Part shown: in pieces, positions 7,776 through 33,821 of the stretch
Layout: each line of letters opens with the position of its first letter
Numbering within the stretch: the stretch's first letter is position 1
IMG/VR virus record: IMGVR_UViG_3300032214_000715
Span: 1-64,000 of that record
DNA length: 64,000 nt
Reading direction: 5' to 3' (one strand)
The notes under the pieces: generated by a model
Database searches by the model: none
Told to the model about the DNA's origin: nothing
What the model saw: the letters and a program-made list of their open reading frames with translations, nothing else
Translations under genes and position numbers: made by a program

Positions 7776-7892
7776 AATAGTCCTATACTTTAGTATAGTA
7801 TTTAATAGTAGACTTTTATTAATAAAAGCAGCATATATTATAAGCAATATATTGAAAGTTATTGTGATAAATAGTACAGGAGAATGGTCATC

Positions 7893-8651: not shown

Positions 8652-8654
8652 TAT

Positions 8655-9371
8655 ATGCGTATAAGCGAAATTCAACGACAACAGTCTGACACTCAACCGC
8701 TACACATGGAAGTTGATTATGAATCAGTGACTGGACTCAAGCCTGTGCCGCAGAATCCCGAGTACGCTTATACGATTGTCAACGTCAGTGATCAATTAAG
8801 TTTAGTTCAAGCCGACACTAGCGTTGAATTTTATCATGTAAAGAACGACGGCGCTCGATTCATAGGGTTTCTAAATCTTAGAAGAATCGCTCATCGCGGA
8901 TTGAAGAACCCAGTACAAGTTAGCAATGTCGCTTTAGATAGTGACTTTCGTAATCGCGGCGTAGGGTTGATGATGTATGGTGTGATATTGGGTCTTGGTC
9001 ACACTATAGTCGCTGATGATTCTCAAACATCCGAATCGCGCAAGCTGTGGGTACGTCTGTGGAACATGCCCGGAGTTACTGTACGTGGCATGATAGATGT
9101 GTTGAGTAGTTATGTTGACCCAGAGAAAGACAACTCATGGAACAATGAGGCTAAACAAATCAAGTCGCAACTCAAGCGCATAAAAGCACAACCACTTCAA
9201 GATTTTAATCGTAGGCGTGATCGTTATGGTGATGAATGGGAACGATACTCTTTTGAAGTCATGCCAAAGACCGACGGTAGTGAGTTGACTGCTCCCGGAA
9301 TATCAATCTACAGTCGCAATAGTTCATACGATGACTACGATCCTGTTGGTCTGTATGCTACTATGAATTGA
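8655..9371 (+). CDS. GNAT-fold acetyltransferase, capsid-targeting-like N-terminus
   Basis: VALDSDFRNRGVG acetyl-CoA motif A, SQT..SRKLW; MRISEI start. Confidence 0.7.
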   Translation: MRISEIQRQQSDTQPLHMEVDYESVTGLKPVPQNPEYAYTIVNVSDQLSLVQADTSVEFYHVKNDGARFIGFLNLRRIAHRGLKNPVQVSNVALDSDFRNRGVGLMMYGVILGLGHTIVADDSQTSESRKLWVRLWNMPGVTVRGMIDVLSSYVDPEKDNSWNNEAKQIKSQLKRIKAQPLQDFNRRRDRYGDEWERYSFEVMPKTDGSELTAPGISIYSRNSSYDDYDPVGLYATMN

Positions 9372-9426
9372 CTACTTGATTGCGTTAATAAATCTATACA
9401 GATAAATACTCATAGTACTATACACT

Positions 9427-10146
9427 ATGAGAGCCGATCAATTTATTACCGAAATAGAAGCACTGAGCAAGGACGAGTTTAATCCTCGGGCCGAACAGTT
9501 CAGAATTCAACATATATCCACTCAGTGGTTTGCTGATGCCAAGCCTCTAAAGTCACTGCCTGGGTACACTTACTATCTCAAGCCTGACTTCACTGGGTCT
9601 ATAGCAGTGTATATTTTTGATCCCAAGAATCCCGACATTTTCGTTGGAGAGTTAACCGCACACCCATACTGGGCTATGGATAACGCAGAGCGTAAATCAG
9701 TGTATGGGACTCCCACACTAATGGTACATCCGGATTATAAAAACCAGGGTATAGCAACAGAGCTTTATAAGTTAGTATTGCTGCCACCACCAGAGGGCGC
9801 GGGCATCACTCTACTATCAGACTCAGCGCAAACAAGTGGTGGCGCAGGAGTATGGGCATCATTAGCTAAAAAGATTCCAGGCGTGTCAGTAATTGGGTTG
9901 TTGAGAATGAGGAAACGAGACGAATACAGTGATACTGAACTAAAATTATATAATCATCTGTTTGGTGATTTGGGCGCCACCTATTATGCTCAGACCTTAC
10001 ACTATTACTTTTACTGGATTCCAGTTAGGAAAATGGGCCGTCGTTTAGAGAACGCCGTTAAAGACTCACTTGTAAAAATTTATCCCAAGGCTCATCACAG
10101 AATGTACGATAGCTTTTTAATGGCGCGATGGATGAGTGAACAATGA
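9427..10146 (+). CDS. GNAT-fold acetyltransferase, capsid-targeting-like N-terminus
   Basis: VHPDYKNQGIAT motif A, SDSAQTSGGAGVW; MRADQFITE; late promoter 9402-9408. Confidence 0.72.
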   Translation: MRADQFITEIEALSKDEFNPRAEQFRIQHISTQWFADAKPLKSLPGYTYYLKPDFTGSIAVYIFDPKNPDIFVGELTAHPYWAMDNAERKSVYGTPTLMVHPDYKNQGIATELYKLVLLPPPEGAGITLLSDSAQTSGGAGVWASLAKKIPGVSVIGLLRMRKRDEYSDTELKLYNHLFGDLGATYYAQTLHYYFYWIPVRKMGRRLENAVKDSLVKIYPKAHHRMYDSFLMARWMSEQ

Positions 10147-10793
10147 AAATACACGACATAATCAACGAAATACGTTGGACAAAAACTAATGAGCCATATA
10201 GTTCTATGGTCAGTAGAATGGCCAACATTAACAAATATGAAACACTTGGAAGCGGTGAATACGGACATGTGTTTAAGCATCCTAGCATGGATCGCGCAGT
10301 CATCAAATTGTTTGCCAATGATCGTGGGTACGCTGAGTACTTGCGTTGGATGGCTCAAAATCAACAAAACAGTTATGTGCCAAAAATTATTCCCTACGAA
10401 GACGGTAGCATTATAAAACCATATAAGCAAGTTATGAAAACCGCTGATGGTATTTTAAGTTCTCGCATAGGTATGATTCAATTGCGTAAATTAGAACCTA
10501 TATCTACTGCTCAATTATTTGAATTAAAAAAATACATATTCAATTTTTTGAATCCAGACAACAAAACTCGTATAAGCGTTCGCACACATTTCTTGTTTGA
10601 TATACGAGAAAATGATTTAGAACAGATTCAACAAAATAGTCGCGAAGCAGATCCTGATTTAAGTAATCTATTCACGGAGTTACTTCGCATGTATCGTCGT
10701 TGGGGTGGTCTAGATATACACAATCAAAATTTGATGTGGGATCCAGAAACAAATCATGTAGTATTCATTGATGTATTGAGCGTAAGCAAATGA
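10143..10793 (+). CDS. Ser/Thr protein kinase-like
   Basis: LGSGEYG P-loop, VIK, DIHNQN catalytic loop, FID; MKIHDIINE. Confidence 0.75.
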   Translation: MKIHDIINEIRWTKTNEPYSSMVSRMANINKYETLGSGEYGHVFKHPSMDRAVIKLFANDRGYAEYLRWMAQNQQNSYVPKIIPYEDGSIIKPYKQVMKTADGILSSRIGMIQLRKLEPISTAQLFELKKYIFNFLNPDNKTRISVRTHFLFDIRENDLEQIQQNSREADPDLSNLFTELLRMYRRWGGLDIHNQNLMWDPETNHVVFIDVLSVSK

Positions 10794-11419
10794 AAATTCT
10801 AGACATTATTACCTACGAGACTGACATAGATCCACTATTCATTACTAAAAATGTATTAGACGAGAGCACCGATATATCTTCAGAATTACAGCAATTAATT
10901 GATACCTCAATAATGAATGGTAACAAAATGGCAAGTTCAAGAACTCTCAAGTATCAATTATATGTTCCTCGTGTTGCTAAAGTAAATGAAGATATTAAAC
11001 CCAATGCTGAATTATGGACCAGTACTGCTGAGTTTCGTGGCGACAATGATTATACCAGTGCCTGGGCAGAATGGTGTTACTATAATATGCCCCAGTGGTT
11101 AGCTAAACGTGGTAAATTATATCAGGTTCAACCTGGCGCACGAGTATTATATATAGGTAGCGATGCGGTTGCTAAAAAGGTAGCACGAATACTAGGACAC
11201 GAATTTGCTGGCAGTAAATATACTATTCTACAATATCCTTGGGAAAAATTATCGGAACATTTTGATGCTATCAGATATCCAGCAAGATTAAAAAATCGAT
11301 TTACCAGTAGAATGAATAATATACTAATGAGTTTATGGGACGTAGAGTCTACTGCTTGGTTCAGAACTGATAAATTAAAACTGTTAAATGAAGTAGATAT
11401 AAAAACAAGAGAGTGGTAA
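10790..11419 (+). CDS. Hypothetical internal-head-like protein
   Basis: MKILDIITYE...VLDE N-terminus. Confidence 0.6.
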   Translation: MKILDIITYETDIDPLFITKNVLDESTDISSELQQLIDTSIMNGNKMASSRTLKYQLYVPRVAKVNEDIKPNAELWTSTAEFRGDNDYTSAWAEWCYYNMPQWLAKRGKLYQVQPGARVLYIGSDAVAKKVARILGHEFAGSKYTILQYPWEKLSEHFDAIRYPARLKNRFTSRMNNILMSLWDVESTAWFRTDKLKLLNEVDIKTREW

Positions 11420-12892
11420 ATGAGAGCAAATCAATTTTTGTTAGAATATAGTAGACAGATAACTGCTCAACAGTTAGGCAACAAGATATTGAATGCCATG
11501 GTCAATACCGTTGAGGGAGATATTCCCGATAATGACGTTGGTCTGGCTAGAGCTGCGTGGATATTAGGTGCCGCAAATAATCCAAGCGCGTATCGAGCTT
11601 ATAATTCGCGACTTTCAAAAGGCACTGCTATGTATCTGTTTGGCAAAATTTATATTATAAACAACGTTAATGATGCTATTCCATTAGCAGAAGAAATAAA
11701 ACCAAAAGTCATTGATTACATACTGAACTATATAGAAAGCAATGATCCCACACCAAATCATCAATACACACAATGGATGGCACGTGCGTGGGCCAATGAA
11801 AATGGCGATTGGAGATTAGAAGATTTAAATCGTAATGACATATTAACTGCCTTTCATGTCGGTAAAAGCAGTAGAAAGATTAAAGCGGAACATCTTGACA
11901 TTAACAAATTTAAAACTTATCGCGAGCTTGAGAAAACAATGCGCGAAAATTATGATATTAATGAGTTGCTAGGTAATAAAGCAACTCCAAATCAAATGGG
12001 TAAATTTGAAATCATACATAAAGATTCAGATGTCACACTAGTAAAATTAATAGATTTTCGTTCCAGCGAATACTGGGGCGAAAAATACGGTCCAAAAGAA
12101 AGACGAGCAGTATGGTGTACGCTACAGCCAAATAAATTCAATGAATATAACAGTAAGGGTCCGCTGTATGTTATAAAACCCAATCAAGAAGAATATGTGG
12201 GTGAAAAATATCAACTACATTTTCCAACTAGTCAGTTTATGGATGTAGAAGACGAGCCAGTTGATTTAGTAGTACTGCTAAAACAAAAATACCCACAACT
12301 TGAAGAAGTATTTAAAAAAATAGAGCCGGAAATAAAAGATTATGTATTTTTTGCTCCAGATGATGTTCTACTGGAATTATGGAGCAAGATATACAATATA
12401 GCAGACATGTATTATGATAAGATACTAGATGAGTGGATAGAAACAGATTATGATTATCAGAATTTAGTAGAGCCACGAGCAAAACAATTGGGATATGTTA
12501 CCGATAGTGGTGAAGTTGATTGGAATAAAATACCAAGAACTAGCAAACTTCATTATTCTAAGCATGAAAGACAGGCTGCGACGATGTTGGATGATCTTAA
12601 GACTATAAAAATCACTCGTGCTTCAGCTATAAGAAACATGGCAGCACGACTTCTTGAAACTGTTGATTATGAAGAAGAATTAACATTAAGTATATTACCT
12701 AGATTGGCCTCTGACACAATTACTTATAGTAATGTATATGGATCACGAATATCCAGTTTCTTGGGTGATTATGTGTATGTTGAGAAAATGCCAAAAGATG
12801 ATTCTTCCAAACGAAGTCAAGAAATAAAACGATCAATAAATCCCGATATGATTGTTGGCGATTGGTTTGTTAAATCAACTAGAGATTTATAA
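11420..12892 (+). CDS. WCT-domain family protein 1
   Basis: MRANQFLLEY; DPTPN..Y..W, WCT, GPLY, EKYQLHF, QFMD. Confidence 0.75.
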   Translation: MRANQFLLEYSRQITAQQLGNKILNAMVNTVEGDIPDNDVGLARAAWILGAANNPSAYRAYNSRLSKGTAMYLFGKIYIINNVNDAIPLAEEIKPKVIDYILNYIESNDPTPNHQYTQWMARAWANENGDWRLEDLNRNDILTAFHVGKSSRKIKAEHLDINKFKTYRELEKTMRENYDINELLGNKATPNQMGKFEIIHKDSDVTLVKLIDFRSSEYWGEKYGPKERRAVWCTLQPNKFNEYNSKGPLYVIKPNQEEYVGEKYQLHFPTSQFMDVEDEPVDLVVLLKQKYPQLEEVFKKIEPEIKDYVFFAPDDVLLELWSKIYNIADMYYDKILDEWIETDYDYQNLVEPRAKQLGYVTDSGEVDWNKIPRTSKLHYSKHERQAATMLDDLKTIKITRASAIRNMAARLLETVDYEEELTLSILPRLASDTITYSNVYGSRISSFLGDYVYVEKMPKDDSSKRSQEIKRSINPDMIVGDWFVKSTRDL

Positions 12893-12893
12893 T

Positions 12894-13931
12894 ATGAGAG
12901 CTACACAGTTTATAACAGAAGCCGCCACTGATATTGTGTATCATTATATGAATACATACGATGCCATTAGAACTCTGCGTGATAATCATTATTCATTAGA
13001 AAGTAGTACTGGTTTAGATGTTGAAGAAAAAATGATGCCAAAGAATAAGCACTGGTATCTAGCAACTACACGCAGCAAAGTAGGTGATTATCATATACAA
13101 AAAGCAGGTACCAGTGGAGCAATATTTGTATTGAATGGTCGTTGGTTAAATCAAAATTACGAAACTAGACCAGTAGATTATTGGTCACCAGTCTGGAATT
13201 ATAAATCATTTCTAAAGAAGGGAGTATGGAGTAAAGAAATATCAGCGTCTAGTAAACGAAGTATGTGGCAAGATAAACCCTATAGTGGTAGTGAAGCCGA
13301 AGATCGCGTATTCAGCGATACTCACGCTATACCGCTGCGTGGTAGTACACTAGAAATACACGTATTTGTAATATCTACGGTACATAAACCATTTTCTGAT
13401 ACTACAAAAAAGTCATTACAATTATCTACCTATTATGATAAAGAATCATTAGGCGCAAGAGCGGCCGAAGTTAGAGAAATATTGAGGTGGGGGCAAAAAC
13501 GAGATATACCCGTGTATCTGTATGATAATAAACAGGATTGGATAACACAGCGACCCAATAATCGTATTGACCCCAACAGTGAATATGGGCGCAAATTATT
13601 ATCTGGTAAACCCGCAAAATCTTATATTAGAACGCCATACGTATCAGATTATTATAATAATGCCCCATATTGGATTGAATTGATTGAAAAGAATCCTGCT
13701 ACTGATAAATTAAGTGAACCTGCTGATAAACTGCGATACAATATACTATATTATTGGGATACCTTTAAATCATTTCAAACAAATGTTATGGGTAATGCTG
13801 CTCGTAATCCTGAATCACCAGATTATCCTGGTGTAATAGAAATCAATAAATTTTTATCACAAAAGCGACTACCAGATATTAAATCACTACAAGAATTCTT
13901 AAAGCGTAAATGGTCCAGCTATAAACACTAA
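12894..13931 (+). CDS. Possible ADP-ribosyltransferase-fold protein
   Basis: MRATQFITE; VYHY, YLATTRS, EAEDRV spacing resembles ART catalytic strands (function tentative). Confidence 0.45.
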   Translation: MRATQFITEAATDIVYHYMNTYDAIRTLRDNHYSLESSTGLDVEEKMMPKNKHWYLATTRSKVGDYHIQKAGTSGAIFVLNGRWLNQNYETRPVDYWSPVWNYKSFLKKGVWSKEISASSKRSMWQDKPYSGSEAEDRVFSDTHAIPLRGSTLEIHVFVISTVHKPFSDTTKKSLQLSTYYDKESLGARAAEVREILRWGQKRDIPVYLYDNKQDWITQRPNNRIDPNSEYGRKLLSGKPAKSYIRTPYVSDYYNNAPYWIELIEKNPATDKLSEPADKLRYNILYYWDTFKSFQTNVMGNAARNPESPDYPGVIEINKFLSQKRLPDIKSLQEFLKRKWSSYKH

Positions 13932-13949
13932 GATGATAAATACTAAATT

Positions 13950-16103
13950 ATGCGTGTAAAAGAATACTATTCAAATAAATCAGTACTACTTGAGTACAAT
14001 CGCTCAATTACGGCAAGACATTATGGTGCCAAATTAATTAGAGCACTATTAAATACTGAGTATGGTAAGAAAACATTAGCCTCATACGGTACAAATGAAA
14101 AAGAATTACTTGATAAATTAAGCACAGATCAGAATTTACAAACGGCAGTATTGGCTCCGTTTGAAGAAATGGACCCTACCAGCAATAAAGAATTTACACC
14201 TTGGATAATCAATAAGTTTGTAAATAATGAATTACCCAGTATTGATGGGACTGATATTGCGACTTATATTAAAAAATTATTAACTAACTTTGCTTGGGCT
14301 CGGGGTAAAAAACTATTATCACAAACAGATATTAATCGTTATTCATACGCAGAATTAGTAAGTAAATGTGATTTCTATCCTGAGATAGCGGATACCAAAG
14401 TATTGTATAACGGTCCGGAAGGTCAATTTGTAATACCAAATACCGTAAAGGCAAGTATGGAATTACAAAAGATTGGAACTGTAACTAGTTGGTGTACTGC
14501 TGACAGTCGTGCTCCTAGACATTATCCTGGATACACCAGTCGTGGTCCCTTATATGTTTGGATTGATCATACTGGCGACAAAGTTCAATTTCATTTTCCC
14601 GATGGTCAGTTTCAAAAAGAAAATAATATGAGTATTAGGCCCGAAGAACTTGAAACTCTATTAAATAGCAGACCGCAATTTGCTAAAGTGTTTATGCCAA
14701 TACTAACACGAGAGTTTGTTAATCGCCCAGAACTTTCTAGATTATTACCACAGAGCATAATTAAGAAAATTAGTGAGCGAGTAAATCTAGATTGGGCTAG
14801 AGTTATTAAAGGCAATCCAGAAATAATTCTGACCCTACCATCATATGTAATTACTCGTGAAATGCTTGAAGTAGCAATTGATTCTGACGCAATGCTTTTA
14901 TTAAGAGTTCCATCACAATTAGTAGATCGTGAATTATTAGAATTAGCTATTCTACACAAAGCATATAAAGTAGATTTATTCGTAGAGAGATTTCCAAAAC
15001 TTGTAGACAATAAATTATTATTTGATCTGATGAAGGAGGATTATACTGTAGCTAAAGCCTTATCTCCACTATATTGGAATCAAGAGTTGGTAACTGCTGC
15101 TGTAAATGCTGTGCCAGAATATATTAAATATGTTCCGATACAGTATGTTAATAAAGAACTGTTATTAAAAGCCGGGCATTATGATCCAAATTTATTTTTA
15201 ATATCAGAATTTAAAGAATATATGACACCCGCGGTTGCCATGGGTATTGTGAAGGAAAACGGTCTAAGACATTTTGACAAAATACCAGAACGATTAGTAA
15301 ATAAGACGTTATTGGCAACTGCGTTAAAGTATTCTGAATCAAGATTAGATAGAGATGGACAACCAAGTGCTTATGTAAATCGTGAATTTCTCACTAAAGC
15401 ATATCAAGCATATCCCGACTTATTTACTGATGATGTAATTAAAATTGGTATCAAATATAACTCGGCTATGCTTAGAATAATGCCCGATGATAGAAAAACT
15501 TTAGAGGTATGTACCACGGCAGTTAAAAAGAATCCTACAAATATTGCTTATGTGCCGGAAGAATTTAGACCTAAATTATGGGTGTTGGCATTGACAATGG
15601 AGCCAGATTTGATAGTTCATAACGAGTCACATCAATATATTACCAAAGAAGTAGCACACGCTATGATAAAACGAGATGGCGGTCAAATTCTGAATCCAGT
15701 GATACCAAAAGAGTTTAAAACTCTACCGATGTATAGATTGGCTGCTATTAGTACGCCCAGTATAAACTCTCAAGTAAGAATATCAGATGCTATAAAAGAA
15801 CAAAGAAAATCAGCAAATATATTTGCTGATGTTGATTCAGAAAAATACCCAACACTAAGTGCGGTATATCAAAAGTACGGTAATAAAAACTGGCCACACG
15901 GCGAAAACTCATTATTAACCCGAGTACCAATTAATTTATTTGATAGTCTCAGAGCAGATTTAAGTAAATTCTCTCGTGATATTGGCGGTCGTTATAAAGT
16001 AATGTGGCGTGGTAAACGTGCCGAAAGAAGAGCACATACTAAACGAGAGGAAGCAGTGGCATTCTCAATTTATGCCTCTATGAGTCACCTTTACAAAAGA
16101 TAA
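13950..16103 (+). CDS. WCT-domain family protein 2 with DUF4116-like repeats
   Basis: VLLEY; DPTSNKEF..W, WCTA, GPLY; repeats like TAVKKNPTNIAYVP; late promoter 13936-13942. Confidence 0.75.
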   Translation: MRVKEYYSNKSVLLEYNRSITARHYGAKLIRALLNTEYGKKTLASYGTNEKELLDKLSTDQNLQTAVLAPFEEMDPTSNKEFTPWIINKFVNNELPSIDGTDIATYIKKLLTNFAWARGKKLLSQTDINRYSYAELVSKCDFYPEIADTKVLYNGPEGQFVIPNTVKASMELQKIGTVTSWCTADSRAPRHYPGYTSRGPLYVWIDHTGDKVQFHFPDGQFQKENNMSIRPEELETLLNSRPQFAKVFMPILTREFVNRPELSRLLPQSIIKKISERVNLDWARVIKGNPEIILTLPSYVITREMLEVAIDSDAMLLLRVPSQLVDRELLELAILHKAYKVDLFVERFPKLVDNKLLFDLMKEDYTVAKALSPLYWNQELVTAAVNAVPEYIKYVPIQYVNKELLLKAGHYDPNLFLISEFKEYMTPAVAMGIVKENGLRHFDKIPERLVNKTLLATALKYSESRLDRDGQPSAYVNREFLTKAYQAYPDLFTDDVIKIGIKYNSAMLRIMPDDRKTLEVCTTAVKKNPTNIAYVPEEFRPKLWVLALTMEPDLIVHNESHQYITKEVAHAMIKRDGGQILNPVIPKEFKTLPMYRLAAISTPSINSQVRISDAIKEQRKSANIFADVDSEKYPTLSAVYQKYGNKNWPHGENSLLTRVPINLFDSLRADLSKFSRDIGGRYKVMWRGKRAERRAHTKREEAVAFSIYASMSHLYKR

Positions 16104-16105
16104 TT

Positions 16106-17461
16106 ATGAGATACAGTGAATTATTACTTGAATATCAGCAGACAGTTACTGTGCGTAATTATGGAGATGCTCTATTTGATAAATTCTTACGGCACGAATC
16201 TGATACTACAAAAATCAATATATTGAAACACGTACATAGCGATGCTCAATTTGAATTAATACTAAATCGTACAAAACTTAATCAAGAATTAATTGCTCGT
16301 AAAACTGAAATTGTTGGCGCGATTGTAGGAATAATTGAAGATGCTGATCCTACACCAAATAAACAATATGTAGTATGGTTAATCAGAATGTATATCAAAG
16401 ATAATCATACAGAAAAATTAGAAGATGTAGCTAGTACTATCAGTGATTATCTTAAAGATTTTGTTAATTTAAATAGTCGTGGTATTATACCCAGCCCACA
16501 AAATGATATTAATAGATATCGGAGTTTTGATGAGTTTTCTTTTGAAGTAGTATCATTACGCACAGAGTATAAAGACAAATTAAAAATACAAACTGATTTG
16601 AAAAATAGTCAAAGTCGTGTGTATTACGAAGATGAATTACTTAAAGTAATTGTGCCGTTTAATATGGAAGCCGCGATTAAGTATGGACAATATGTAAATG
16701 GTGCTACTGGTCGCTCTGAGCCAAATCAACATACTAAATGGTGTACGGCTGCCACCAAGGCTAATAATTATTTTCAAGACTATCATGATAGTGGTCCACT
16801 GTATATAGTATTCCCTAAACAACCCGAATATGAGGGAGAAAAATATCAGATACATCCTGCTACTGGTGAGTTTATGGATCCAACAAATAAACCGGCTGAT
16901 TCAAGAAAAGTATTTGATAGATTTCCCGAGTTTGCTGATACTATAATAGATGATGAGCCCGATCTAAAAAATATGATAGGGTTAACTGACGATAAAACAT
17001 TAATTGAAATATTTGACGCTTGTGTGCGAATGGCTCAGGTATCTATTGAAAATATACATAGCAATGATTCTGATGCTGAAGAGTATGGTTCTCAGTATGA
17101 TGTGTTGTACAGAGCGTTATTCTATCTATACAGTGATAAAGTTCCACACAGTACCGTACTCAATCAAATAAAACAAAAAACTGCTGATTCTAGAATTTAC
17201 AGTGTACTTCAAATGTCAGTCATAGTCAGAGACATGATTACTATTATAATAATGAAATCCACTGGTAATACCAGTAAAGATATTCAATCTCAATTCGGTG
17301 ATCTATTAGATTTAATAGAAATGGATGTCAAGGTATTAGTTAATAATCCAGACGATGATTCACAAATTCGCAAAATAACACCGATTGATAGTGAAGAAGT
17401 GGGTAATTATATAGTAGCAGCAATTGTTGGTATGGGTAATTACTTGAATCGTGACTATTAA
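16106..17461 (+). CDS. WCT-domain family protein 3
   Basis: MRYSELLLEY; DPTPNKQY..W, WCTA, GPLY, EKYQIH, EFMD. Confidence 0.75.
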   Translation: MRYSELLLEYQQTVTVRNYGDALFDKFLRHESDTTKINILKHVHSDAQFELILNRTKLNQELIARKTEIVGAIVGIIEDADPTPNKQYVVWLIRMYIKDNHTEKLEDVASTISDYLKDFVNLNSRGIIPSPQNDINRYRSFDEFSFEVVSLRTEYKDKLKIQTDLKNSQSRVYYEDELLKVIVPFNMEAAIKYGQYVNGATGRSEPNQHTKWCTAATKANNYFQDYHDSGPLYIVFPKQPEYEGEKYQIHPATGEFMDPTNKPADSRKVFDRFPEFADTIIDDEPDLKNMIGLTDDKTLIEIFDACVRMAQVSIENIHSNDSDAEEYGSQYDVLYRALFYLYSDKVPHSTVLNQIKQKTADSRIYSVLQMSVIVRDMITIIIMKSTGNTSKDIQSQFGDLLDLIEMDVKVLVNNPDDDSQIRKITPIDSEEVGNYIVAAIVGMGNYLNRDY

Positions 17462-17478
17462 AATTACTAAATACTAAT

Positions 17479-19770
17479 ATGCGTGCGTCGGAATTTTATA
17501 GATCAGTATTACTTGAATATAATCGTGATGTTACCAAGCGTCAATTTGGTAATAAATTATTGGCGGCGTGGGAGCGTGGTGCTGATTTAGGCAATGATTC
17601 ACATGCTGCTGGACATATTCTGAAACTATACGGACCAGATGAAACTCCCGAGAATATAGTAAATAAAATACTGTCAATAATAGAGCGCAGTGACCCTACA
17701 TATACTCAAGGAGGCGGAGGGTTATATGTGCCCTGGTTAGCTCGCGAATATGCTGCTGGTAATATCAAAAGATTAGAAGACTTATTTGGTTGGAAACAAT
17801 TATTAGCCGATTTTCATCGCTATAAAGTGCGTGGTAATTTCCCACAACAATATAAAGATATTGGTAAATTAACTGCTACAAGTGGTATCAGTGAGTATGG
17901 ATTGGCTGATGTGTTGGAGAAATATTCAGGTAATGTCACAACTGAATTCAGTAATACCTATCGCAGTACAGTAACCGAATTAGTTAAGCGTGGCGAAGCA
18001 ACAGAATTATATAGCGACAATAATGTCATATTGGTGAGACCATTAACAGAATCAGCCTCTAAACAATTAGGCTCGCCAAGATGGTGTACTGCGTGGGAGA
18101 AAAATAATCGTTTTCATTTCTACAATAACGCAGGTCCACTTTACATACTATTACCCTTACACCCAACTCATCGCACTGAAAGATATCAGATACATTTTGA
18201 ATCTAGACAAATAATGAATGAGCACGATAATGAGGTGTCACTCAGTATTATTTTCAAACGATTCCCAGAATTACAGAAGGTATTTAATCAAATAGTACCA
18301 GATCAGATAGACTATATTTCTACAATTCCGCACGCCACGGTAATGAAATTATTTCAGGCATGCTGTAAATTAATTACAACGCCCGAGGCAACAAATGTAA
18401 TTGAATTAGGTATAGACGATGATTCAAATACTCCAGTCAAATATTATATAGATGATATTGAAAATTTGTTATCAGATTTTGCCGATAATTTTGATGAAGA
18501 GTATATGGAAGCAATGATAACTGAAGGATTAGGAATAGATACTCATATATCTGATTTACCAAGATTAATTGGTGCTATGTTAGCTAACAACTTCTATGCC
18601 GATAGAGCTATCAATGGAAGAGAATCTCTATTAACAGGAGAATTACTAGAGCCATATATTAAGTGGATCAATGAACATATTGAAATCAGTAGAAAAGATG
18701 CCAATTTATCAGCCGAGATTCGCAGCACTATTCGCAAATCTATTAATGTTGATCGTTGGATGGCATATATGTCTATTCCGAAAAAAACATATAAATTACG
18801 AGAATCAATATTAACAGAAGATCCAGAACGAAGAAGAGAATATGTATATACCAAATACTTTGACAAGTTATTTAATAAAGCGACTAATGACGACACTGAT
18901 TTATATATGTTCTTCAATGAGCGTGGGGATGATGTCAGTGACGAATATTTTGATTTCTTCACTCGCGAGTGGTACAAACCAGGAGTAGTAGAGAAAATAA
19001 TTCAGATACTGGTAGATAGTGATCCAACTCGTGAGTTAATATATATTGACTGGTTAGCTCGTCAATACTTAAATGAAACTATTCCTAGTCTAGAAGATGT
19101 TTATTCTTATGAGAATCCTCTTAGACAGTATCAACGATATAAGAACTCACCCGATTTCCCACAAGAATACAAAGATATCAATCGTTTAAATGGTTCCAAC
19201 TTCATGGAGTTAATGACAAAATGGTATAAACCTCCAGAAAACAAAAACCCAGGAAAAACTTTAGTCGTAGACGATAACGAACTATATACTGCTATGGTAC
19301 CATTAGATGAACCGGGTTCTCAAAAACTAGGGTTGGGTACTAACTGGTGTACGGCATATACTCAAGCACCGTGTAGATATGTTGATTACAGTGAGCGCGG
19401 TGAATTAATAGTATTGATACCTAAGAAACCAGCACAAGCCGGAGAAAAGTATCAGATACATTTAAGACTAAGACTAAGAAAATCAGATTCTGGTATTCGT
19501 GGATGGCAAGTTATTACAGACATGGGAGATTTTAACGAATATTTCGGTAAAGATAGTGAAATTGCTTTGGGCGAGTGTAGCACTCAAACAAATCATGATA
19601 TCAGATTTCGTGGAATAGTTAATAGATTTGGTGCTGGTCCAGTACTTAATACTCTAAACAAACTAGGTGCTCTACAAGCCACTGGAAAATATAAGTCTCA
19701 TGCTAATCAAAATATCTCAGATATTGCTGAGTTATATGGTCAATTATATGAATATGATTGGAAAGACTGA
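17479..19770 (+). CDS. WCT-domain family protein 4 (two domain copies)
   Basis: VLLEY; WCTA twice, EKYQIH/ERYQIH; internal LRESILTE; CTAAATA 17467-17473. Confidence 0.75.
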   Translation: MRASEFYRSVLLEYNRDVTKRQFGNKLLAAWERGADLGNDSHAAGHILKLYGPDETPENIVNKILSIIERSDPTYTQGGGGLYVPWLAREYAAGNIKRLEDLFGWKQLLADFHRYKVRGNFPQQYKDIGKLTATSGISEYGLADVLEKYSGNVTTEFSNTYRSTVTELVKRGEATELYSDNNVILVRPLTESASKQLGSPRWCTAWEKNNRFHFYNNAGPLYILLPLHPTHRTERYQIHFESRQIMNEHDNEVSLSIIFKRFPELQKVFNQIVPDQIDYISTIPHATVMKLFQACCKLITTPEATNVIELGIDDDSNTPVKYYIDDIENLLSDFADNFDEEYMEAMITEGLGIDTHISDLPRLIGAMLANNFYADRAINGRESLLTGELLEPYIKWINEHIEISRKDANLSAEIRSTIRKSINVDRWMAYMSIPKKTYKLRESILTEDPERRREYVYTKYFDKLFNKATNDDTDLYMFFNERGDDVSDEYFDFFTREWYKPGVVEKIIQILVDSDPTRELIYIDWLARQYLNETIPSLEDVYSYENPLRQYQRYKNSPDFPQEYKDINRLNGSNFMELMTKWYKPPENKNPGKTLVVDDNELYTAMVPLDEPGSQKLGLGTNWCTAYTQAPCRYVDYSERGELIVLIPKKPAQAGEKYQIHLRLRLRKSDSGIRGWQVITDMGDFNEYFGKDSEIALGECSTQTNHDIRFRGIVNRFGAGPVLNTLNKLGALQATGKYKSHANQNISDIAELYGQLYEYDWKD

Positions 19771-19772
19771 CA

Positions 19773-20447
19773 ATGAGAGTCAAAGACTTATTAGAATATG
19801 ACAGTGATAGTCCAGCCGGCAAACAGATAATGGACATATTGTCTGATAACGGATATGAATTATTAGGCAGCGGTGTAGATAAATCAGTATGGGCAAAAAC
19901 TGAAGACAATGTTGTTGGTATATTGATGCCGTCATCAAAAAAGATAGATGATGCTATGAAGAGCTTTTTAGTTCTGTATAACTTGGCAAAAGAATTTCCC
20001 AATAATAAACATTTGCCACGATATGTTAAGTTTAGAGATGAATCGGGTAAAGAATCGCACTATAGTGAATTTACTGTAGCGGGACGAAAATTCATACAAT
20101 TTGGTATGGAACGATTAATATCAATTGACTGGAATAGCGATCTTATGAATGTTTTATATCAAGTAAGAAACTTTGCTCAATTTCGTCATCATATGCGTTG
20201 GCCCGAAATATGGACTAGATTATGTGGTATGTCTAAGTATTTAAAATCTAAAGAGATTAAATCTCGTTTAGAAGATGTAGAGATATCATTCAAAGAGTTA
20301 TACGATACTATGAAATTAATTATTGATCGTGGTATGGCGGCTGACTTATATATTGATAGATTTGAAAATAATATAATGATGCGTAAAGATGGTACTCCAG
20401 TAATAGTTGACCCATATTACTACACTTCAGTTAATAGACCCAAGTAA
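19773..20447 (+). CDS. Ser/Thr protein kinase-like
   Basis: MRVKDLLEY; LGSG, DRFENNIM, VIVDPY. Confidence 0.7.
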   Translation: MRVKDLLEYDSDSPAGKQIMDILSDNGYELLGSGVDKSVWAKTEDNVVGILMPSSKKIDDAMKSFLVLYNLAKEFPNNKHLPRYVKFRDESGKESHYSEFTVAGRKFIQFGMERLISIDWNSDLMNVLYQVRNFAQFRHHMRWPEIWTRLCGMSKYLKSKEIKSRLEDVEISFKELYDTMKLIIDRGMAADLYIDRFENNIMMRKDGTPVIVDPYYYTSVNRPK

Positions 20448-20450
20448 ATT

Positions 20451-21914
20451 ATGAGAGCAGATCAGTTTATATTATTAGAGTATGATGCCAAGAAAACGAT
20501 ACAGGCACTGGGCAATAAATTATTAATTGCTCTGGCTAAAACTCACCCATTTTTTATACCTGATCATCTATATGGCGCAAGTGTATTAGCAGCAACGGCA
20601 TTTTTTCCAGCAAAATATGATCAGGGTCGTGATATTGTGATGGATATTGTTGGTAAAATGGCGGCATTTAGTTCATTAAATGCTCCCGAAGTACTTGAAA
20701 AATTCAAAGAGCCAATATTAATCGCATTGTTGAAAGAGATAGAAGAAAAAGATCCAACCGCACACAAAGAATATACTCCGTGGTTAGCCCGGGTATGGGC
20801 CGCGGCTGGTCAGCCGAACTCTACTGAGGGAAGTCTTAAACTTGAAGATTTAAATCGTGGTAATGTCTTGGGCGCTTTTGATATAGGTAAGCGTAAAAGA
20901 AAGATTAAACCAGAACACAGTGATATTGGTAGATATCGCAGTTACGCGGAGTTTGAAAACACAATTAAATCAAATTACAATATATATAATTTACTGGGCG
21001 TGGAAGACCCAGATGAAGATCCAGGTAATTATGAGGTTGTTTATAATGACGGCAGTATTGTGCGTGTAATTGTTCCGCTAGATAAACAAGCTGCTTGTTA
21101 TTGGGGGAAAAATACTGAGTGGTGTACTGCTACTCGCACTGGAAAAAATTATTATGACTACTATAGTAGTCGTGGCAAACTATACATAATACTACCATAT
21201 AACCCAAAATATCCCGAAGAAAAATATCAATTACATTTTGAAACTGAACAATTCAAAGATGAAAATGATGATGATGTAGATTTGTCAGCAATACTACGCA
21301 AGTATCCTGGATTAGAAGAATTCTTTGTCAGACAAATCCCCCAATTAAAAAAATACATGGCGTTTATTAAAGATGACACACTGACTGAAATTATAAAAGT
21401 AATACTACCAGTGGCACTTGATACGGCATGGGAGATTGTAAATGAGTGGGAATCAAATGATGAGTACTGGTATTCATGGCGAGCAGAACAAGCAATTGAA
21501 TTGGGATATGTCACTGATGATGGAGATATAGATTGGGATCGTGTAAATGAAGATGATCGTCTAAATGATTATACTAGATATAGTGATGAAGCTCGTAGAT
21601 TTATTAATGATGTAAAAAGTATCGGCAACTTAACTGGTAAAACAATTAAAAAATTAACCACCGAGTATGTAGAAAGCGGGCATGCTGAAGAATCTATGCC
21701 AACGATAAGTTTATTACCATATATATTAATCTATTACGTAAATGGATTCAAGAATGGTGATAATGGTGATTCTTTACGCTCAGTGTTTTTTAAGTTTTCT
21801 TTCTATGAGTCTGATTACTATAATACTGTCAGTGTTAATCGTGAATTAAAAAAATATATTCAAAAAATAGGCGAAGTTGATGATATTTCCATTATGGCAA
21901 GAACCAACATATAA
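20451..21914 (+). CDS. WCT-domain family protein 5 (closest to 11420)
   Basis: MRADQFILLEY; LEDLNR, KIKPEH.DI, WCTA, EKYQLHF. Confidence 0.75.
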   Translation: MRADQFILLEYDAKKTIQALGNKLLIALAKTHPFFIPDHLYGASVLAATAFFPAKYDQGRDIVMDIVGKMAAFSSLNAPEVLEKFKEPILIALLKEIEEKDPTAHKEYTPWLARVWAAAGQPNSTEGSLKLEDLNRGNVLGAFDIGKRKRKIKPEHSDIGRYRSYAEFENTIKSNYNIYNLLGVEDPDEDPGNYEVVYNDGSIVRVIVPLDKQAACYWGKNTEWCTATRTGKNYYDYYSSRGKLYIILPYNPKYPEEKYQLHFETEQFKDENDDDVDLSAILRKYPGLEEFFVRQIPQLKKYMAFIKDDTLTEIIKVILPVALDTAWEIVNEWESNDEYWYSWRAEQAIELGYVTDDGDIDWDRVNEDDRLNDYTRYSDEARRFINDVKSIGNLTGKTIKKLTTEYVESGHAEESMPTISLLPYILIYYVNGFKNGDNGDSLRSVFFKFSFYESDYYNTVSVNRELKKYIQKIGEVDDISIMARTNI

Positions 21915-21928
21915 CGATAAATATTACT

Positions 21929-22360
21929 ATGAAAATACTACTATCACTATTACTAGCAATATCTGTTTTATCAGCAACTGCCGCAGAAAAATCCGGCGTG
22001 GCATATAACTATAAAGTCACTAGAGTCGTTGATGGTGACACCGTTGGATTTGAAGCATCGTTTTTACCTGTCCCTCTCAAAAAAGAGTTAAGCGTCAGAG
22101 TGTATGGTGTTGATACTCCAGAAAAGGGACATCGTGCTAAGTGTGACGCAGAAAACAAGCGTGGATTAGAAGCAACTGCGTTTACTAAAAAAATGATAAC
22201 CTCGGCCAAAAGAACACAGATTGTTATCATTGATTGGGACAAATACGGTGGGCGTGTATTGGGCGATGTTCTAATAGATGGAATCAGTTTGCGTTCTATG
22301 TTGATTAGCAGCGGATATGCTAGACCGTATTTTGGCGAAGCAAAACAAAGCTGGTGTTAA
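21929..22360 (+). CDS. Secreted thermonuclease (SNase-like)
   Basis: Signal peptide; VVDGDT, RVYGVDTPE, DKYGGRVL; late promoter 21917-21923. Confidence 0.9.
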   Translation: MKILLSLLLAISVLSATAAEKSGVAYNYKVTRVVDGDTVGFEASFLPVPLKKELSVRVYGVDTPEKGHRAKCDAENKRGLEATAFTKKMITSAKRTQIVIIDWDKYGGRVLGDVLIDGISLRSMLISSGYARPYFGEAKQSWC

Positions 22361-22380
22361 TATACTAGGAAAAATATATC

Positions 22381-22890
22381 ATGAAGAAAAAATTAGATGA
22401 GAATAAAATTGTTGGTAGTTTTTTTGGAATACCAGTTTCAAAAAAACAACTGAATGAATTTGCTAATCTATCTAAGTCAGCGATCACAGATGACGATGTT
22501 GTTATTGACAGACCGGATCAAGTCACCGATGTAAGTTCAGCCAGAAATGAACTACTAAGAATAATGAAGTTGGCTGGGCAAGGCGGTTCTCAAAATAAAC
22601 CCGCTGGTTGGAATCTAGTATTATACAACGATGATATTACTCCGGGAGAAGCAGTTATTGACGGGCTTAAAAGTGTCATGAACATGAGTGGGGCTGCGAT
22701 ATCAAGAGTTATACATGACTGTACTCTTAAGGGTCACGCAGTTCTTGGAACATATGCAATAGAAGACAAAGCACTCAGATTAAGAGATTCACTGAAACAA
22801 GCAATAGACAGTAATCGTGAACATGTCGGTGGAAATAATACTAACGGGCCCTGGGATGTAAAGATAGAAGTGCTTAAAGCAGGCGACTAA
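22381..22890 (+). CDS. ClpS-like domain protein with N-terminal extension
   Basis: LVLYNDDITPGEAVI..L...H..G.AV matches ClpS core. Confidence 0.6.
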   Translation: MKKKLDENKIVGSFFGIPVSKKQLNEFANLSKSAITDDDVVIDRPDQVTDVSSARNELLRIMKLAGQGGSQNKPAGWNLVLYNDDITPGEAVIDGLKSVMNMSGAAISRVIHDCTLKGHAVLGTYAIEDKALRLRDSLKQAIDSNREHVGGNNTNGPWDVKIEVLKAGD

Positions 22891-22891
22891 T

Positions 22892-23356
22892 GTGAAAATT
22901 TTTGATATTCTCAATGAGATAGCCAATAATCCTTATCCAGTTGAGTTGGCAAAAGATACTGGTGACACTATCAATTACAAATTTGTCACTGACAGTGGTG
23001 TAGATTATTGGGTTAGTTTTAGAACAGAAAAAAATAAAGATAAGCGTGGTGCTTGGTTGGTGGTAACAGCGGGCAAACCAACAGGGCTAAAAGACAAAAA
23101 CTATAAAAACAAAACAGGAATTACTGGTACTGGCGATCAATTTCGTGTATTCGCATCTATAGGAAATGCCATCAATCAATATGTTAATTCCTCTCATCAA
23201 CCAGACTTTATTACATTTACAGCAAGAGAAGAATCACGCGTCAAATTGTACAATTTGATTACTAGAAATATCAGTGATTATGTCAGTGGATGGACTCGCG
23301 GAAAAGTAATAAGAACTCCCAAATACACTTTATACACTGTAGTAAAGCAAAAATAG
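22892..23356 (+). CDS. Hypothetical internal-head-like protein (GTG start)
   Basis: MKIFDILNE N-terminus. Confidence 0.6.
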   Translation: MKIFDILNEIANNPYPVELAKDTGDTINYKFVTDSGVDYWVSFRTEKNKDKRGAWLVVTAGKPTGLKDKNYKNKTGITGTGDQFRVFASIGNAINQYVNSSHQPDFITFTAREESRVKLYNLITRNISDYVSGWTRGKVIRTPKYTLYTVVKQK

Positions 23357-23476
23357 ATAAATACTAATAGCACACTACCTTGGGACTTTTTAGTCACGGT
23401 GTGTTCAGAGCGGCTGCTGCTATTTCTACTCTTATCGCCATTCGTGTAGAATAAAGTGAGCACTAATTTATGTATT

Positions 23477-24112
23477 ATGCTGTCAAAAGAAATTATAAAT
23501 GAGATGGATAGAAGAAATTTTCTAGGGGCAACTTTAGGAACAGTCGCCGGTGTCGGACAAGCACAGGCAGCACCCTATGTGAATTTTGATAATATGACTA
23601 CTCAACAGCATAACTTTTATAGAGAAAAAATCTCTGATCTTCAATGGAGAGCATCAAGAATATTAGGAAATCTTAAAGAGACATTAGCCTCCAAAAATGC
23701 AGCAGCCTATAAAAAAATAGAAAATAAAAAAGTGACGGTGTTTTACTATAAGTGGCTAGCAGGCGTTACAGAAAAGGGTTTAGAACTGGACGTTACTGTT
23801 TTTTGGGATTTGCCAGACGATAGTATTGCTTGTACACTCGGGCATGAATTGGCACACATTGTGCTAGGGCACAATTCAAATGTAAATAATAAGCAGGAAG
23901 AACACGCCGCCGATTTATGGGGAGCAAAATTGGCGCAACAAGCAGGATACTCAGTAGAAGAGGCATTACGAGGTGTTTATGAGGCCGGGGGACAGTATGG
24001 CAAGGGAAGCGCTAGTCATCCGAGTTATACTGAAAGAGTATTACATCTTAGAAAAAATGGATATCCATTAAAAATCAATGGAACATTTCATCCAGAAACA
24101 ATAAAAAAATAA
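23477..24112 (+). CDS. M48-family zinc metallopeptidase with Tat-like signal
   Basis: HELAH, E..AD..G, SHP..R motifs; IINE then MDRRNFLG...AQAA. Confidence 0.78.
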   Translation: MLSKEIINEMDRRNFLGATLGTVAGVGQAQAAPYVNFDNMTTQQHNFYREKISDLQWRASRILGNLKETLASKNAAAYKKIENKKVTVFYYKWLAGVTEKGLELDVTVFWDLPDDSIACTLGHELAHIVLGHNSNVNNKQEEHAADLWGAKLAQQAGYSVEEALRGVYEAGGQYGKGSASHPSYTERVLHLRKNGYPLKINGTFHPETIKK

Positions 24113-24144
24113 CGAACATAAAGTGAGTACTAATATCAAGTATT

Positions 24145-25509
24145 ATGCGTGTAAATGAAATAGAACGATATCCGGCCGATTCTGATAACAACGATATACA
24201 AGCTAATCGTGAGTCTATGGTATCCGAAGCAGAAACTAGAACCAAAGCCGCAGATATAAAATCAAATCGTGTTCATCTAATCGTGTTTGATATAGATGAC
24301 ACCTTATTTCATACCACGGCAAAGATCAATGTTATAAAGCCAGACGGTACTAAACTTAGTTTAACTAATCAACAATACAACAACTACGTTTCTGAACCCG
24401 GTGATAAATTTGACTTTGAAGAGTTTAAGGACGCGGAAAAGTTTAGTCGCGAAAGTGATCCTATCCGTCCAATGATAGCAAAGCTAAAAGCAATACTAAA
24501 CAACTCACGAACTAGCAAAATCATTATGCTTACCGCACGTAGTGATTTTGACGATAGAGATAAATTTCTAGAAACGTTTGCCAGATACGGCATAGATATG
24601 AGTCGCGTACACGTACATCGTGCTGGTAACTTGAATCACCCAAATAGTCCAGCAGAAAAAAAGGCAGTGTTTATTAGAAACTATCTGAATACTAATAAGT
24701 ATGATCGCGTTACAATGTACGATGATAGTATGAAGAATCTACGTGTATTCTCTGAATTAAAGAGTGAGTATCCGAACGTACAATTTTCTCCCTACTTCGT
24801 AGATCATCACGGAAGAATTAAGTTAATTCGTGAGTCTATGGTATCCGAAGCAGAAACTAGAACCAAAGCCGCAAAAGAAATCAACAAGACTTTCAAAGAA
24901 AGTGGCTACAAAAAATTAGGTAGTGGCGCAGAAGCAACTGTATGGGCAAAAGATGAGCATAGCGTTATAAAAATAATTATGCCAGAAGATCGCTCAAGTA
25001 TGGATTCTGCTGTGCGTACATTTAAGAAGTTCTATGAATTTTGTATTAAAAATGCGGAGCAGTCAAATTTGCCACGATTCGTACAAGTTACCAAAAACGG
25101 ACACGTGGAAACATTTACTGCTGCCAATCGTGAATTTACTATGATCGGCATGGAACGTCTAAAGCCTCTAAAAGAGGGTAGCTTCAGTCAAGCGCTAATA
25201 TGGATGATGAGCGATCTTGTCACTCACGGAAAAAGATGGAACGAAGCACACAAATTAATGACTAAGCCATCAACATGGAAACACTGGGACGGTCCACCAA
25301 CCGTAAAAGAGTTAGTAGCTAAAATAAAAAATCTTGATGATCTAACTTATGCCAAGTTTGATGTGCTATATACTCTAATGCTGCTATTGTACAAGCGAGG
25401 CAAGCTAGACAAAGTTGGTTGGGATTTACACACAGAGAATGTCATGCAGCGTTCTGACGGAACACTGGTTATAGTTGATCCATGGTTTGCCAGTGAGATG
25501 AAAGATTAA
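24145..25509 (+). CDS. HAD phosphatase / protein kinase fusion
   Basis: FDIDDTL, LTAR, YDD (HAD); LGSGAE, VIK, DLHTEN, IVDPW (kinase). Confidence 0.8.
   Translation: MRVNEIERYPADSDNNDIQANRESMVSEAETRTKAADIKSNRVHLIVFDIDDTLFHTTAKINVIKPDGTKLSLTNQQYNNYVSEPGDKFDFEEFKDAEKFSRESDPIRPMIAKLKAILNNSRTSKIIMLTARSDFDDRDKFLETFARYGIDMSRVHVHRAGNLNHPNSPAEKKAVFIRNYLNTNKYDRVTMYDDSMKNLRVFSELKSEYPNVQFSPYFVDHHGRIKLIRESMVSEAETRTKAAKEINKTFKESGYKKLGSGAEATVWAKDEHSVIKIIMPEDRSSMDSAVRTFKKFYEFCIKNAEQSNLPRFVQVTKNGHVETFTAANREFTMIGMERLKPLKEGSFSQALIWMMSDLVTHGKRWNEAHKLMTKPSTWKHWDGPPTVKELVAKIKNLDDLTYAKFDVLYTLMLLLYKRGKLDKVGWDLHTENVMQRSDGTLVIVDPWFASEMKD
24207..24873 (+). repeat. 46-bp perfect direct repeat flanking the HAD domain
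   Basis: TCGTGAGTCTATGGTATCCGAAGCAGAAACTAGAACCAAAGCCGCA at 24207-24252 and 24828-24873. Confidence 0.92.
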
Positions 25510-29582: not shown

Positions 29583-29652
29583 ATAAATAAAGTGTAGTTC
29601 GCGAATGTTGGAATTCCAACTACTCTATAACTGATAGGAGTCACAGCAAATG
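29583..29652 (+). promoter_or_regulatory. Late promoter plus structured leader of GIY-YIG gene (copy 1)
   Basis: ATAAATA; GTAGTT/AACTAC stem; GAAT/ATTC inner stem; GGAG; CAGCAAATG. Confidence 0.7.
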
Positions 29653-33614: not shown

Positions 33615-33821
33615 TTAGTACATCTTTTTTGGAAGTTCCTGACTATCTAGATATTTTTTCCAGCGATTACGAGCTTTGCTCTTTGCTACTTTTTTATCTA
33701 TGCTGGGCTTTACATAAAATTCACGTTCTCGTAGTGTTTGTAGCAAACCACTATCGGCTACTTTCTTTTTGAACTTACGCATCGCAATTTCGAAATTGTC
33801 TTTTGTATTAACTACCTTCAT
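33615..33821 (-). CDS. rpsU: Ribosomal protein S21
   Basis: FEIAMRKFKKKV..SG....REFYVKPS. Confidence 0.88.
   Translation of the reverse strand: MKVVNTKDNFEIAMRKFKKKVADSGLLQTLREREFYVKPSIDKKVAKSKARNRWKKYLDSQELPKKMY

Follow-up and report, generated by a model that had tools for sequence, protein, structure and literature searches.

Six copies of an uncharacterized module behind a T4-like leader suggest a set of injected effectors in a PA5oct-like jumbo phage

The window analyzed here is a stretch of 64,000 nucleotides, positions 1 to 64,000 of the IMG/VR virus record IMGVR_UViG_3300032214_000715, and it belongs to a jumbo phage of about 341 kb that is related to T4 and resembles PA5oct. Our main finding is that one module of about 210 residues (DPT..W..LED..DI..Y..WCTA..GPLY..KYQxH) is present in six copies over five neighboring genes of the + strand, and that these genes share with unrelated neighbors a leader that follows the same pattern as phage T4's capsid-targeting sequence. 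By analogy with T4, we infer that the five products may be packaged in the phage head, trimmed by a protease and injected as effectors, each with a thiol core that resembles an enzyme and a variable tail to aim it; we put the probability of this reading at about 0.45. An earlier note on the same DNA had pointed out the six copies; the leader common to unrelated neighbors and the link to the virion both go beyond it.

The five open reading frames (ORFs, named by their first nucleotide; Table 1) are open under translation table 11, which was used throughout. Six modules, obtained by cutting the product of ORF 17479 at residue 440, were aligned with MAFFT together with the homolog from Pseudomonas phage vB_PaeM_PA5oct. 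The alignment contains all of the motifs that the earlier note had listed and has 17 invariant columns, including D109, P110, T111, W119, D135, L142, D160, I161, W232, C233, T234, Y243, G247, L249, Q265 and H267 (numbering of the 11420 protein); in the L-E-D motif the Asp is invariant, and the Leu and Glu are nearly so. Searched with a profile of the core, the entire 239-kb record yielded six matches and no more, each of them within the five genes (E 2.8e-84 to 1.7e-46); phage PA5oct yielded a single match (E 8.3e-46). The six-copy observation is confirmed, and lies far beyond chance.

The first nine residues of the family proteins recur in neighbors that are otherwise unrelated to them. Of the 17 + strand genes that follow one another at 7893-25509, thirteen open with M-(R/K)-x-x-(E/Q/D)-(F/I/L)-(I/L)-x-E or something close to it; all five family genes bear this leader in a strict or gapped form, while genes 8655 and 24145 have the first half of the motif only. 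Counted at residues 5-9, the strict motif occurs in 12 of 309 genes versus 0.52 expected (Poisson p 5.6e-13), and the leader arginines are encoded by both AGA and CGT, synonymous changes that argue for selection on the protein and not on the DNA. The leader has the form of a T4-type N-terminal propeptide of about 10 residues ending in hydrophobic-x-Glu, and the N-termini of the T4 internal proteins IPII and IPIII, read directly as MKTYQEFIAE, fit its pattern. In T4, the first 10 residues of IPIII are enough to direct a protein to the head, and its cleavage by gp21 is controlled by residues 8 and 10 (PMC9026906; PMC3012670).

The same phage has T4-type head genes. The 239-kb IMG/VR record is a fragment (68% complete) with a T4-type terminase, 52% identical to that of PA5oct, and with gp32- and UvsX-like genes. 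Searches of this record for S77 and Gp23, and tblastn with PA5oct head proteins, gave no match because the record is truncated. A fuller assembly, ENA ERZ28594471 scaffold_5 (341,154 bp), has 100% identity with the record end over 11,404 nucleotides (record positions 227694-239097) and runs past it into a T4-type head module (Table 1), comprising a T4-type core with a prohead protease of the gp21 family (S77), so that this phage encodes a protease of the family that in T4 cuts after L/I-x-E. The Gp23 domain begins at residue 54 of the capsid protein, and L/I-x-E sites abound in the propeptide before it (the first 50 residues), as they do in the scaffold proteins and in the small core protein. 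Megablast of the region against phage records gave no match.

A link to the virion is provided by PA5oct, a phage of the same lineage, some of whose virion proteins were detected elsewhere by electrospray ionization tandem mass spectrometry (ESI-MS/MS; PMC7318152). Its sole family member, gp205 (EST35_0205), has the same module and a similar leader (MKLFEVFTLYE), and is annotated in its record as 'structural protein, ESI-MS/MS'. The gp205 gene is a single copy between the terminase gene and other virion genes, whereas the present phage has its six copies in a separate array. Six PA5oct ORFs have leader-like starts, and three of them, gp205 and the leader-bearing gp150 (encoded between portal and scaffold) and gp381, are annotated as virion proteins from ESI-MS/MS, a proportion that is suggestive, not decisive.

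One of the five genes is itself a fusion. The earlier note had remarked on an LRESILTE just before the second module of ORF 17479 and had thought of a polyprotein. The peptide is present, in the context ...KKTYK-LRESILTE-DPERRREY..., and aligns with the N-termini of the other copies (MRASEF..LLEY), so that ORF 17479 is two complete genes joined end to end. The Met of the second leader is replaced by Leu (TTA) while the hydrophobic-x-E motif is kept; LRESILTE is the fossil leader of the second copy and a candidate internal cleavage site. The exact product of 763 amino acids occurs on four independently assembled contigs (up to 341 kb, from JGI, ENA and Logan assemblies), and the fusion is therefore real; an assembly slip is ruled out. 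The polyprotein idea gains indirect support from 172 relatives, of which 25 contain two to five modules with a hydrophobic-L-x-E motif about 25 residues upstream of each DPT (for example LLxEAMS.., VLTEDI..KYYPNI and LLxEATLDDIY.KYY). Fossil starts such as an internal 'MRFKLTE' are kept at some module junctions, two long multi-module proteins have a stop-free translation, and 118 of the 172 relatives begin with the leader.

Under the proposed mechanism, the five genes and most of their + strand neighbors at 7893-25509 would be late-expressed head cargo. The leader would send each protein into the prohead core, where the phage's own S77 protease would cut after the leader Glu, and the trimmed protein would be ejected with the DNA into the next host. 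At the internal hydrophobic-x-E remnants of ORF 17479, and of relatives with up to five modules, the same protease would split the chain into units. Selection of the target would fall to the variable tails (DUF4116, leucine-rich repeats (LRR), WG repeats and others), and in some relatives the tail is itself an effector, a muralytic enzyme or a GNAT. Several points weigh against this scheme. Of the six leader-like PA5oct ORFs, three went undetected in virions, and contigs of related jumbo phages have the leader on two enzymes that one would not readily expect as head cargo, a 5'-nucleotidase and a dCMP deaminase. The hydrophobic-L-x-E before helix 1 could belong to the fold of the module, and be retained internally without cleavage. 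The timing, finally, is argued solely from analogy with the T4 late promoter TATAAATA and from the positional enrichment of a related motif.

In the window, that exact promoter shows no enrichment (3 found versus 7.45 expected), and the shorter ATAAATA was then used in its place, with composition-matched controls. The 239-kb record contains 101 copies, of which 55 (54%) lie at most 80 nucleotides upstream of a same-strand gene, compared to 6-27% for 20 composition-matched permutations of the heptamer. ATAAATA precedes tail sheath, adaptor, large fiber and head-core genes, as well as cluster genes 7893, 9427, 13950 and 21929; a CTAAATACT variant precedes both the portal gene and ORF 17479, and TATAAATA itself stands before the PA5oct scaffold gene. 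Leader genes outside the cluster are also enriched for ATAAATA (4/7 versus 47/286, p 0.019). Sigma-70 and terminator scans of the cluster did no better than on shuffled controls. By the likeness of ATAAATA to T4 late promoters, the cluster is probably expressed late. A different 15-mer, AAGTGAG[C/T]ACTAAT, has only two copies in the 239-kb record, at about 23445-23470 and 24115-24140 on the + strand, each about 25 nucleotides upstream of a cluster gene (23477 and 24145), and may be a second type of promoter or operator.

As to the nature of the module, the earlier note had proposed an enzymatic or nucleic-acid-binding core, to be checked by alignment, structure prediction and Foldseek. In its conservation the module looks like an enzyme. 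Its Cys and Trp do not vary, its His, its Gln and several Asp/Glu hardly vary and are placed in loops, and in the 490-residue product of ORF 11420 the conserved Cys is the sole Cys. The nucleic-acid-binding half of the proposal is not supported, since four of the five proteins are acidic (isoelectric points 4.9-5.4), which also argues against DNA condensation. AlphaFold2 models were confident (predicted local distance difference test 85.5 for the whole 20451 protein and 87.8 for its core) and show in order a helical lobe, a beta-beta-alpha-(WC loop)-alpha-beta-beta-beta lobe and a helical tail. As modeled, the helical-bundle lobe has three conserved acidic loops, at D101, E132/D133 and D158, and the small alpha/beta lobe has the invariant W-C-T and the conserved Q-x-H. 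With invariant polar residues in the loops of both predicted lobes, the module looks enzyme-like or ligand-binding, and we take it to be a thiol-dependent enzyme or ligand-binding core that would act on a host component early in infection.

Database searches have left the module without a name. Pfam, NCBIfam and PADLOC scans of the five proteins found no family that covers it, and PHROGs returned two families of 'unknown function', for ORF 20451 only. PDB sequences, searched with a profile, yielded no match with E under 0.4, and Foldseek against PDB, with whole model and core, none at E<=0.001. Among predicted viral structures, Foldseek matched the model to uncharacterized proteins of phages, to the PA5oct 'structural protein' and to Marseillevirus metagenome proteins fused to ankyrin, LRR or FNIP repeats; the ESM-Atlas shape search retrieved unnamed viral clusters only. 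In an unbiased search, about 30 of the top 50 matches were GNAT-superfamily structures, and core residues 106-221 loosely superpose on the first half of many such GNAT/MYST acyl-CoA N-acyltransferase folds. The module does not present the complete fold of a GNAT acetyltransferase with its acetyl-CoA-binding loop (Q/R-x-x-G-x-G/A).

The tails agree in large part with the earlier description of one core with swapped C-termini. Those of four copies have no mutual similarity by BLASTP and are unrelated, as the note had stated, but ORFs 11420 and 20451 have tails of common descent (BLASTP E 9e-14, 29% identity). The DUF4116-like repeats mentioned there were recovered above the gathering score in the tail of ORF 13950 and in that tail only (PF13475, E 1e-07, 31.8 bits versus a cut-off of 24.9; best stretch residues 495-540, nucleotides 15432-15569). 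Swapping is also evident in relatives, in which the module precedes WG repeats, DUF4116, LRR, GNAT, a SleB-type cell-wall hydrolase or a GH19 lysozyme. The family is very large: when 1.84 billion representatives were searched with a profile, 12,276 proteins passed a threshold of E<=0.001 and 8,644 passed E<=1e-10, and the nearest ESM-Atlas clusters are 91-100% viral. Directly before the muralytic domain, one relative (P0021) has a mid-chain twin-arginine signal and another (P0014) a hydrophobic segment. In a third, P0141 (841 amino acids), one intact module is followed by five degenerate repeats of its beta-sheet half that have neither the WCTA nor the His motif, so a portion of the module can serve again as a repeat unit. 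The gene of a five-module relative, P0030, adjoins genes for Cas6, a Cas7fv-like protein and a DEAD-helicase on an 18-kb metagenomic contig, where a CRISPR-Cas system may be carried by a phage or other mobile element.

Other explanations of the module and of the leader have to be weighed against packaged effectors. The module could be a non-catalytic adaptor for packaging or ejection, in a MuF-like role, that docks in the prohead core or the DNA-ejection path, takes along the part fused behind it, and uses its Cys, His and acidic residues to bind metal or stabilize the fold. Its constant position N-terminal to the variable part, its cargo-like fusions (SleB hydrolase, GH19, GNAT, repeat domains), the virion location of the PA5oct homolog encoded beside a terminase gene, and the reuse in P0141 of half-modules lacking Cys and His, as if they were a structural unit, speak for such an adaptor, and there is established precedent for fused effectors being packaged in the MuF manner (PMC5512222). 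We nevertheless judge it unlikely: a 9-residue leader common to unrelated neighbors already offers a targeting signal, beside which a 210-residue adaptor would be redundant, the many invariant polar residues in the loops of each of six paralogs are more in keeping with an enzyme than with a docking module, and many family members have a helical tail only, with no recognizable cargo. Alternatively, the leader may not target the capsid at all, the cluster encoding intracellular enzymes of host takeover whose N-termini serve translation start, stability or localization. Kinases of the T7 gp0.7 type are classic early proteins, and they are found in this cluster, which also comes after a block of small + strand ORFs resembling an early region; most cluster genes have no visible Shine-Dalgarno sequence, relatives include nucleotide-metabolism genes with the leader, and the three PA5oct ORFs that escaped detection would be accounted for. 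Against these stand the conservation of positions 5-9 at the protein level despite synonymous codon changes, the near match of the leader to the experimentally defined T4 sequence, the retention of hydrophobic-x-E at internal junctions, where translation start is irrelevant, an upstream motif common to virion genes, and the three PA5oct leader proteins found in virions by mass spectrometry; in our view they leave this second alternative with little weight.

Two further proposals concern the chemistry and descent of the module. The papain-like leader proteases of viral polyproteins and the cysteine protease domain of MARTX toxins cut in cis, and the module could likewise be a self-cleaving cysteine peptidase that separates multi-module chains and module-cargo fusions. 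The order and spacing of C225, H262 and D270 in the 20451 protein fit a papain-like site (Cys, His about 37 residues on, Asp 8-11 further), polyproteins of two to five modules are common, and the mid-chain twin-arginine signal of P0021 could act in export only if exposed by cleavage, the hydrophobic segment of P0014 being likewise mid-chain. Yet no papain-like, CHAP or NlpC/P60 structure appeared in any fold search, most family members are single-module and have nothing to release, and the S77 protease of the phage already explains cleavage at hydrophobic-x-E, which makes the peptidase quite improbable. The other proposal extends the weak resemblance to PcfJ suggested in the earlier note: the module would be a very distant member of the PcfJ superfamily, which is encoded in leading regions of conjugative plasmids and in phages, with a common function in establishment or anti-defense. 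Both occur on mobile elements that enter new hosts, and pcfJ adjoins an AcrIIA9-family gene on pCF10. They share the motif order P...G..[W/H]C.[A/G]...G-strand (strand-P, helix-G, [W/H]-C-x-[A/G], helix, G-x-hydrophobic strand), and the alignment chosen by hhalign was the one made by eye (VIVP..G..WCTA..G.LYI versus FLTP..EG..HCVG..GKTTI). Foldseek against BFVD listed several models annotated as PcfJ-like, at E 0.03-1 only, and in the ESM-Atlas no named cluster lies nearer than PcfJ, which scores 0.91 and shares 149 features, a level that according to the tool is often chance. Profile comparison did not support the resemblance. None of the five proteins matches PF14284 at E<=1, and hhalign of the module against two PcfJ alignments, built from the pcfJ product of pCF10, gave probabilities of 0.08% (E 0.65) and 0.11% (E 0.5) over 43 columns only; pCF10 PcfJ alone gave nothing significant, and an attempt to widen the alignment yielded close enterococcal relatives only. 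PcfJ has His-Cys instead of Trp-Cys and lacks a counterpart of the helical DPT/LED/DI lobe; no solved PcfJ structure turned up. Common descent with PcfJ thus retains only a slim chance.

If the products are packaged effectors, the closest known system is that of T4, in which IPI, IPII, IPIII and Alt, processed by gp21 and injected, share a leader of about 10 residues with the same pattern and the same hydrophobic-x-Glu end. Both phages have T4-type portal, Gp23 and S77 protease genes; in both, unrelated mature parts stand behind one shared leader, and, as with T4 Alt, the putative cargo here includes host-modifying enzymes. The differences are of scale and form: T4 has three small, basic internal proteins, whereas the present phage has at least 13 leader genes in one array, with products of 209-763 amino acids and acidic family members, a leader one residue shorter, and some genes fused into multi-module chains. 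A second likeness is to polyvalent proteins and MuF-toxin fusions (PMC5512222), where arsenals of kinases, acetyltransferases, peptidases and other enzymes are predicted to enter the host with the DNA, and variable C-terminal effectors stand behind a packaging element with proteolytic release proposed. ORF 24145 has a weak Kinase-PolyVal match. In polyvalent proteins the domains are joined in one giant protein, whereas most of the present products come from separate genes with a short leader; no signature domain (MuF, ArdC-N, zincin-like metallopeptidase) was found here, and Iyer et al. 2017 (PMC5512222) do not mention the module. A broader reading, possible but in our view doubtful, would extend these comparisons to the lineage: PA5oct-like jumbo phages would load a large, fast-evolving arsenal through a T4-style 9-residue tag, S77 would remove the tag and cut polyproteins, and the module would represent a major, overlooked class of injected effectors, of new fold and new chemistry. 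The arsenal would comprise kinases, acetyltransferases, a phosphatase, a peptidase and six Cys-His modules, whose family exceeds 12,000 sequence clusters and has no Pfam entry.

The leader-bearing neighbors are listed with the family genes in Table 1. The product of 12894-13931 has language-model neighbors of the ADP-ribosyltransferase fold (DarT/PARP 0.88, OspC 0.85, Arr 0.84, all below 0.9), a lead only, by which it may be an Alt-like cargo enzyme. A Q-x-x-G-x-A-like motif (KNQGIA) is present in 9427-10146 and an R-x-x-G-x-G-like motif (RNRGVG) in 8655-9371, which is of similar size; by eye, both may be acetyltransferases. The + strand gene at 21929-22360 encodes a staphylococcal-nuclease homolog with a Sec-type signal peptide, and from their signals this product and that of 23477-24112 look periplasm-directed, within the cargo array. 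A ClpS-like adaptor gene (PF02617, E 2.7e-07) lies in the cluster at 22381-22890 (+). A cut after the Glu of the family leaders LLE|Y would expose an N-terminal Tyr, a bacterial N-degron, and a tie to ClpS is pure speculation. Elsewhere in the same phage, a lysozyme- or transglycosylase-like protein with the leader is encoded next to the terminase gene.

Table 1. Positions of the module genes, leader-bearing neighbors, promoter-like motifs and head genes (window positions unless indicated; a vertical stroke marks the predicted cut)
Feature	Position	Strand	Details
Family member 1, 490 aa (amino acids)	11420..12892	+	leader MRANQFLLE|Y; core 11696-12352, E 3.1e-71; helical tail homologous to 20451 tail
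Family member 2, 717 aa	13950..16103	+	leader MRVKEYYSNKSVLLE|Y; core 14136-14747, E 1.7e-46; DUF4116-repeat tail
Family member 3, 451 aa	16106..17461	+	leader MRYSELLLE|Y; core 16298-16984, E 1.1e-70; tail unlike others
Family member 4, 763 aa, two-copy head-to-tail fusion	17479..19770	+	core a 17656-18324 (E 1.0e-64); core b 18973-19587 (E 3.7e-58)
Family member 5, 487 aa	20451..21914	+	leader MRADQFILLE|Y; core 20703-21365, E 2.8e-84; protein chosen for folding
Fusion junction LRESILTE	18796..18819	+	residues 440-447 of ORF 17479; aligns with N-terminal leaders of other copies
Leader neighbor, function unassigned	7893-8651	+	MIIRDITNYE
Half-leader neighbor	8655-9371	+	MRISEI, first half of motif only; no Pfam match
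Leader neighbor	9427-10146	+	MRADQFITE; weak GNAT match (PF00583, E 0.0019)
Leader neighbor	10143-10793	+	MKIHDIINE; T7 gp0.7-like protein kinase
Leader neighbor, function unassigned	10790-11419	+	MKILDIITYE
Leader gene between family members, 345 aa	12894-13931	+	MRATQFITE|A; no family match
Leader gene, 224 aa	19773-20447	+	MRVKDLLE|Y; weak T7 gp0.7-type kinase match (phrog_15752, E 0.0013)
Leader gene	22892-23356	+	MKIFDILNE
Near-leader gene, M48-type peptidase	23477-24112	+	MLSKEIINEM start, then directly twin-arginine motif (RRNFLG)
Half-leader gene	24145-25509	+	MRVNEIERY; HAD/PNK-like phosphatase and Kinase-PolyVal-like kinase (weak match)
ATAAATA heptamer	7867..7873	+	17-26 nucleotides upstream of first cluster gene
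Further ATAAATA copies in cluster	starts 9402, 13936, 21917	+	before 9427, 13950, 21929
Variant ACTAAATACT	17466-17475	+	before ORF 17479
Head module, in order	341-kb contig		Portal_T4 (6e-102), 73-aa core protein, scaffold-like, Peptidase_S77 (1.3e-26), second scaffold-like, Gp23 (3.1e-98)

Several features of the window lie outside the cluster. GIY-YIG/HNH-like homing-endonuclease ORFs, with starts that include MYLAYVYRL and MFIYYVYAY, were found on the + strand at 29650-30462, 56475-57347 and 61728-62339, and also at record position 86722. Each of the three in the window has a near-identical ATxATAAATAAAxGT element 67-68 nucleotides upstream, and they look like copies of one mobile cassette. 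ARAGORN identified a 90-nucleotide tRNA-Ser with the unusual anticodon ACT at 60842-60931 (-). Two further minus-strand genes are unrelated to the module finding, an AAA+ ATPase-like gene at 33818-35032 (phrog_4339, E 5.9e-101) and one at 57292-58719 in a PHROG annotated as 'RNA-binding protein' (phrog_850, E 4.3e-126).

If the leader works as a capsid-targeting tag, the set of proteins that a jumbo phage injects would become readable from its genome, and a mechanism known mainly from T-even phages would reach a distant lineage whose genomes measure about 290-340 kb. The idea is testable in PA5oct, which is cultured and for which virion proteomics already exists, and in phages other than T4 the tag could also be put to use to package foreign proteins. 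A working tag would also flag a very large uncharacterized family, with 12,276 cluster representatives, as an injected effector core, and its swappable tails make this family a natural source of new host-takeover or anti-defense chemistry.

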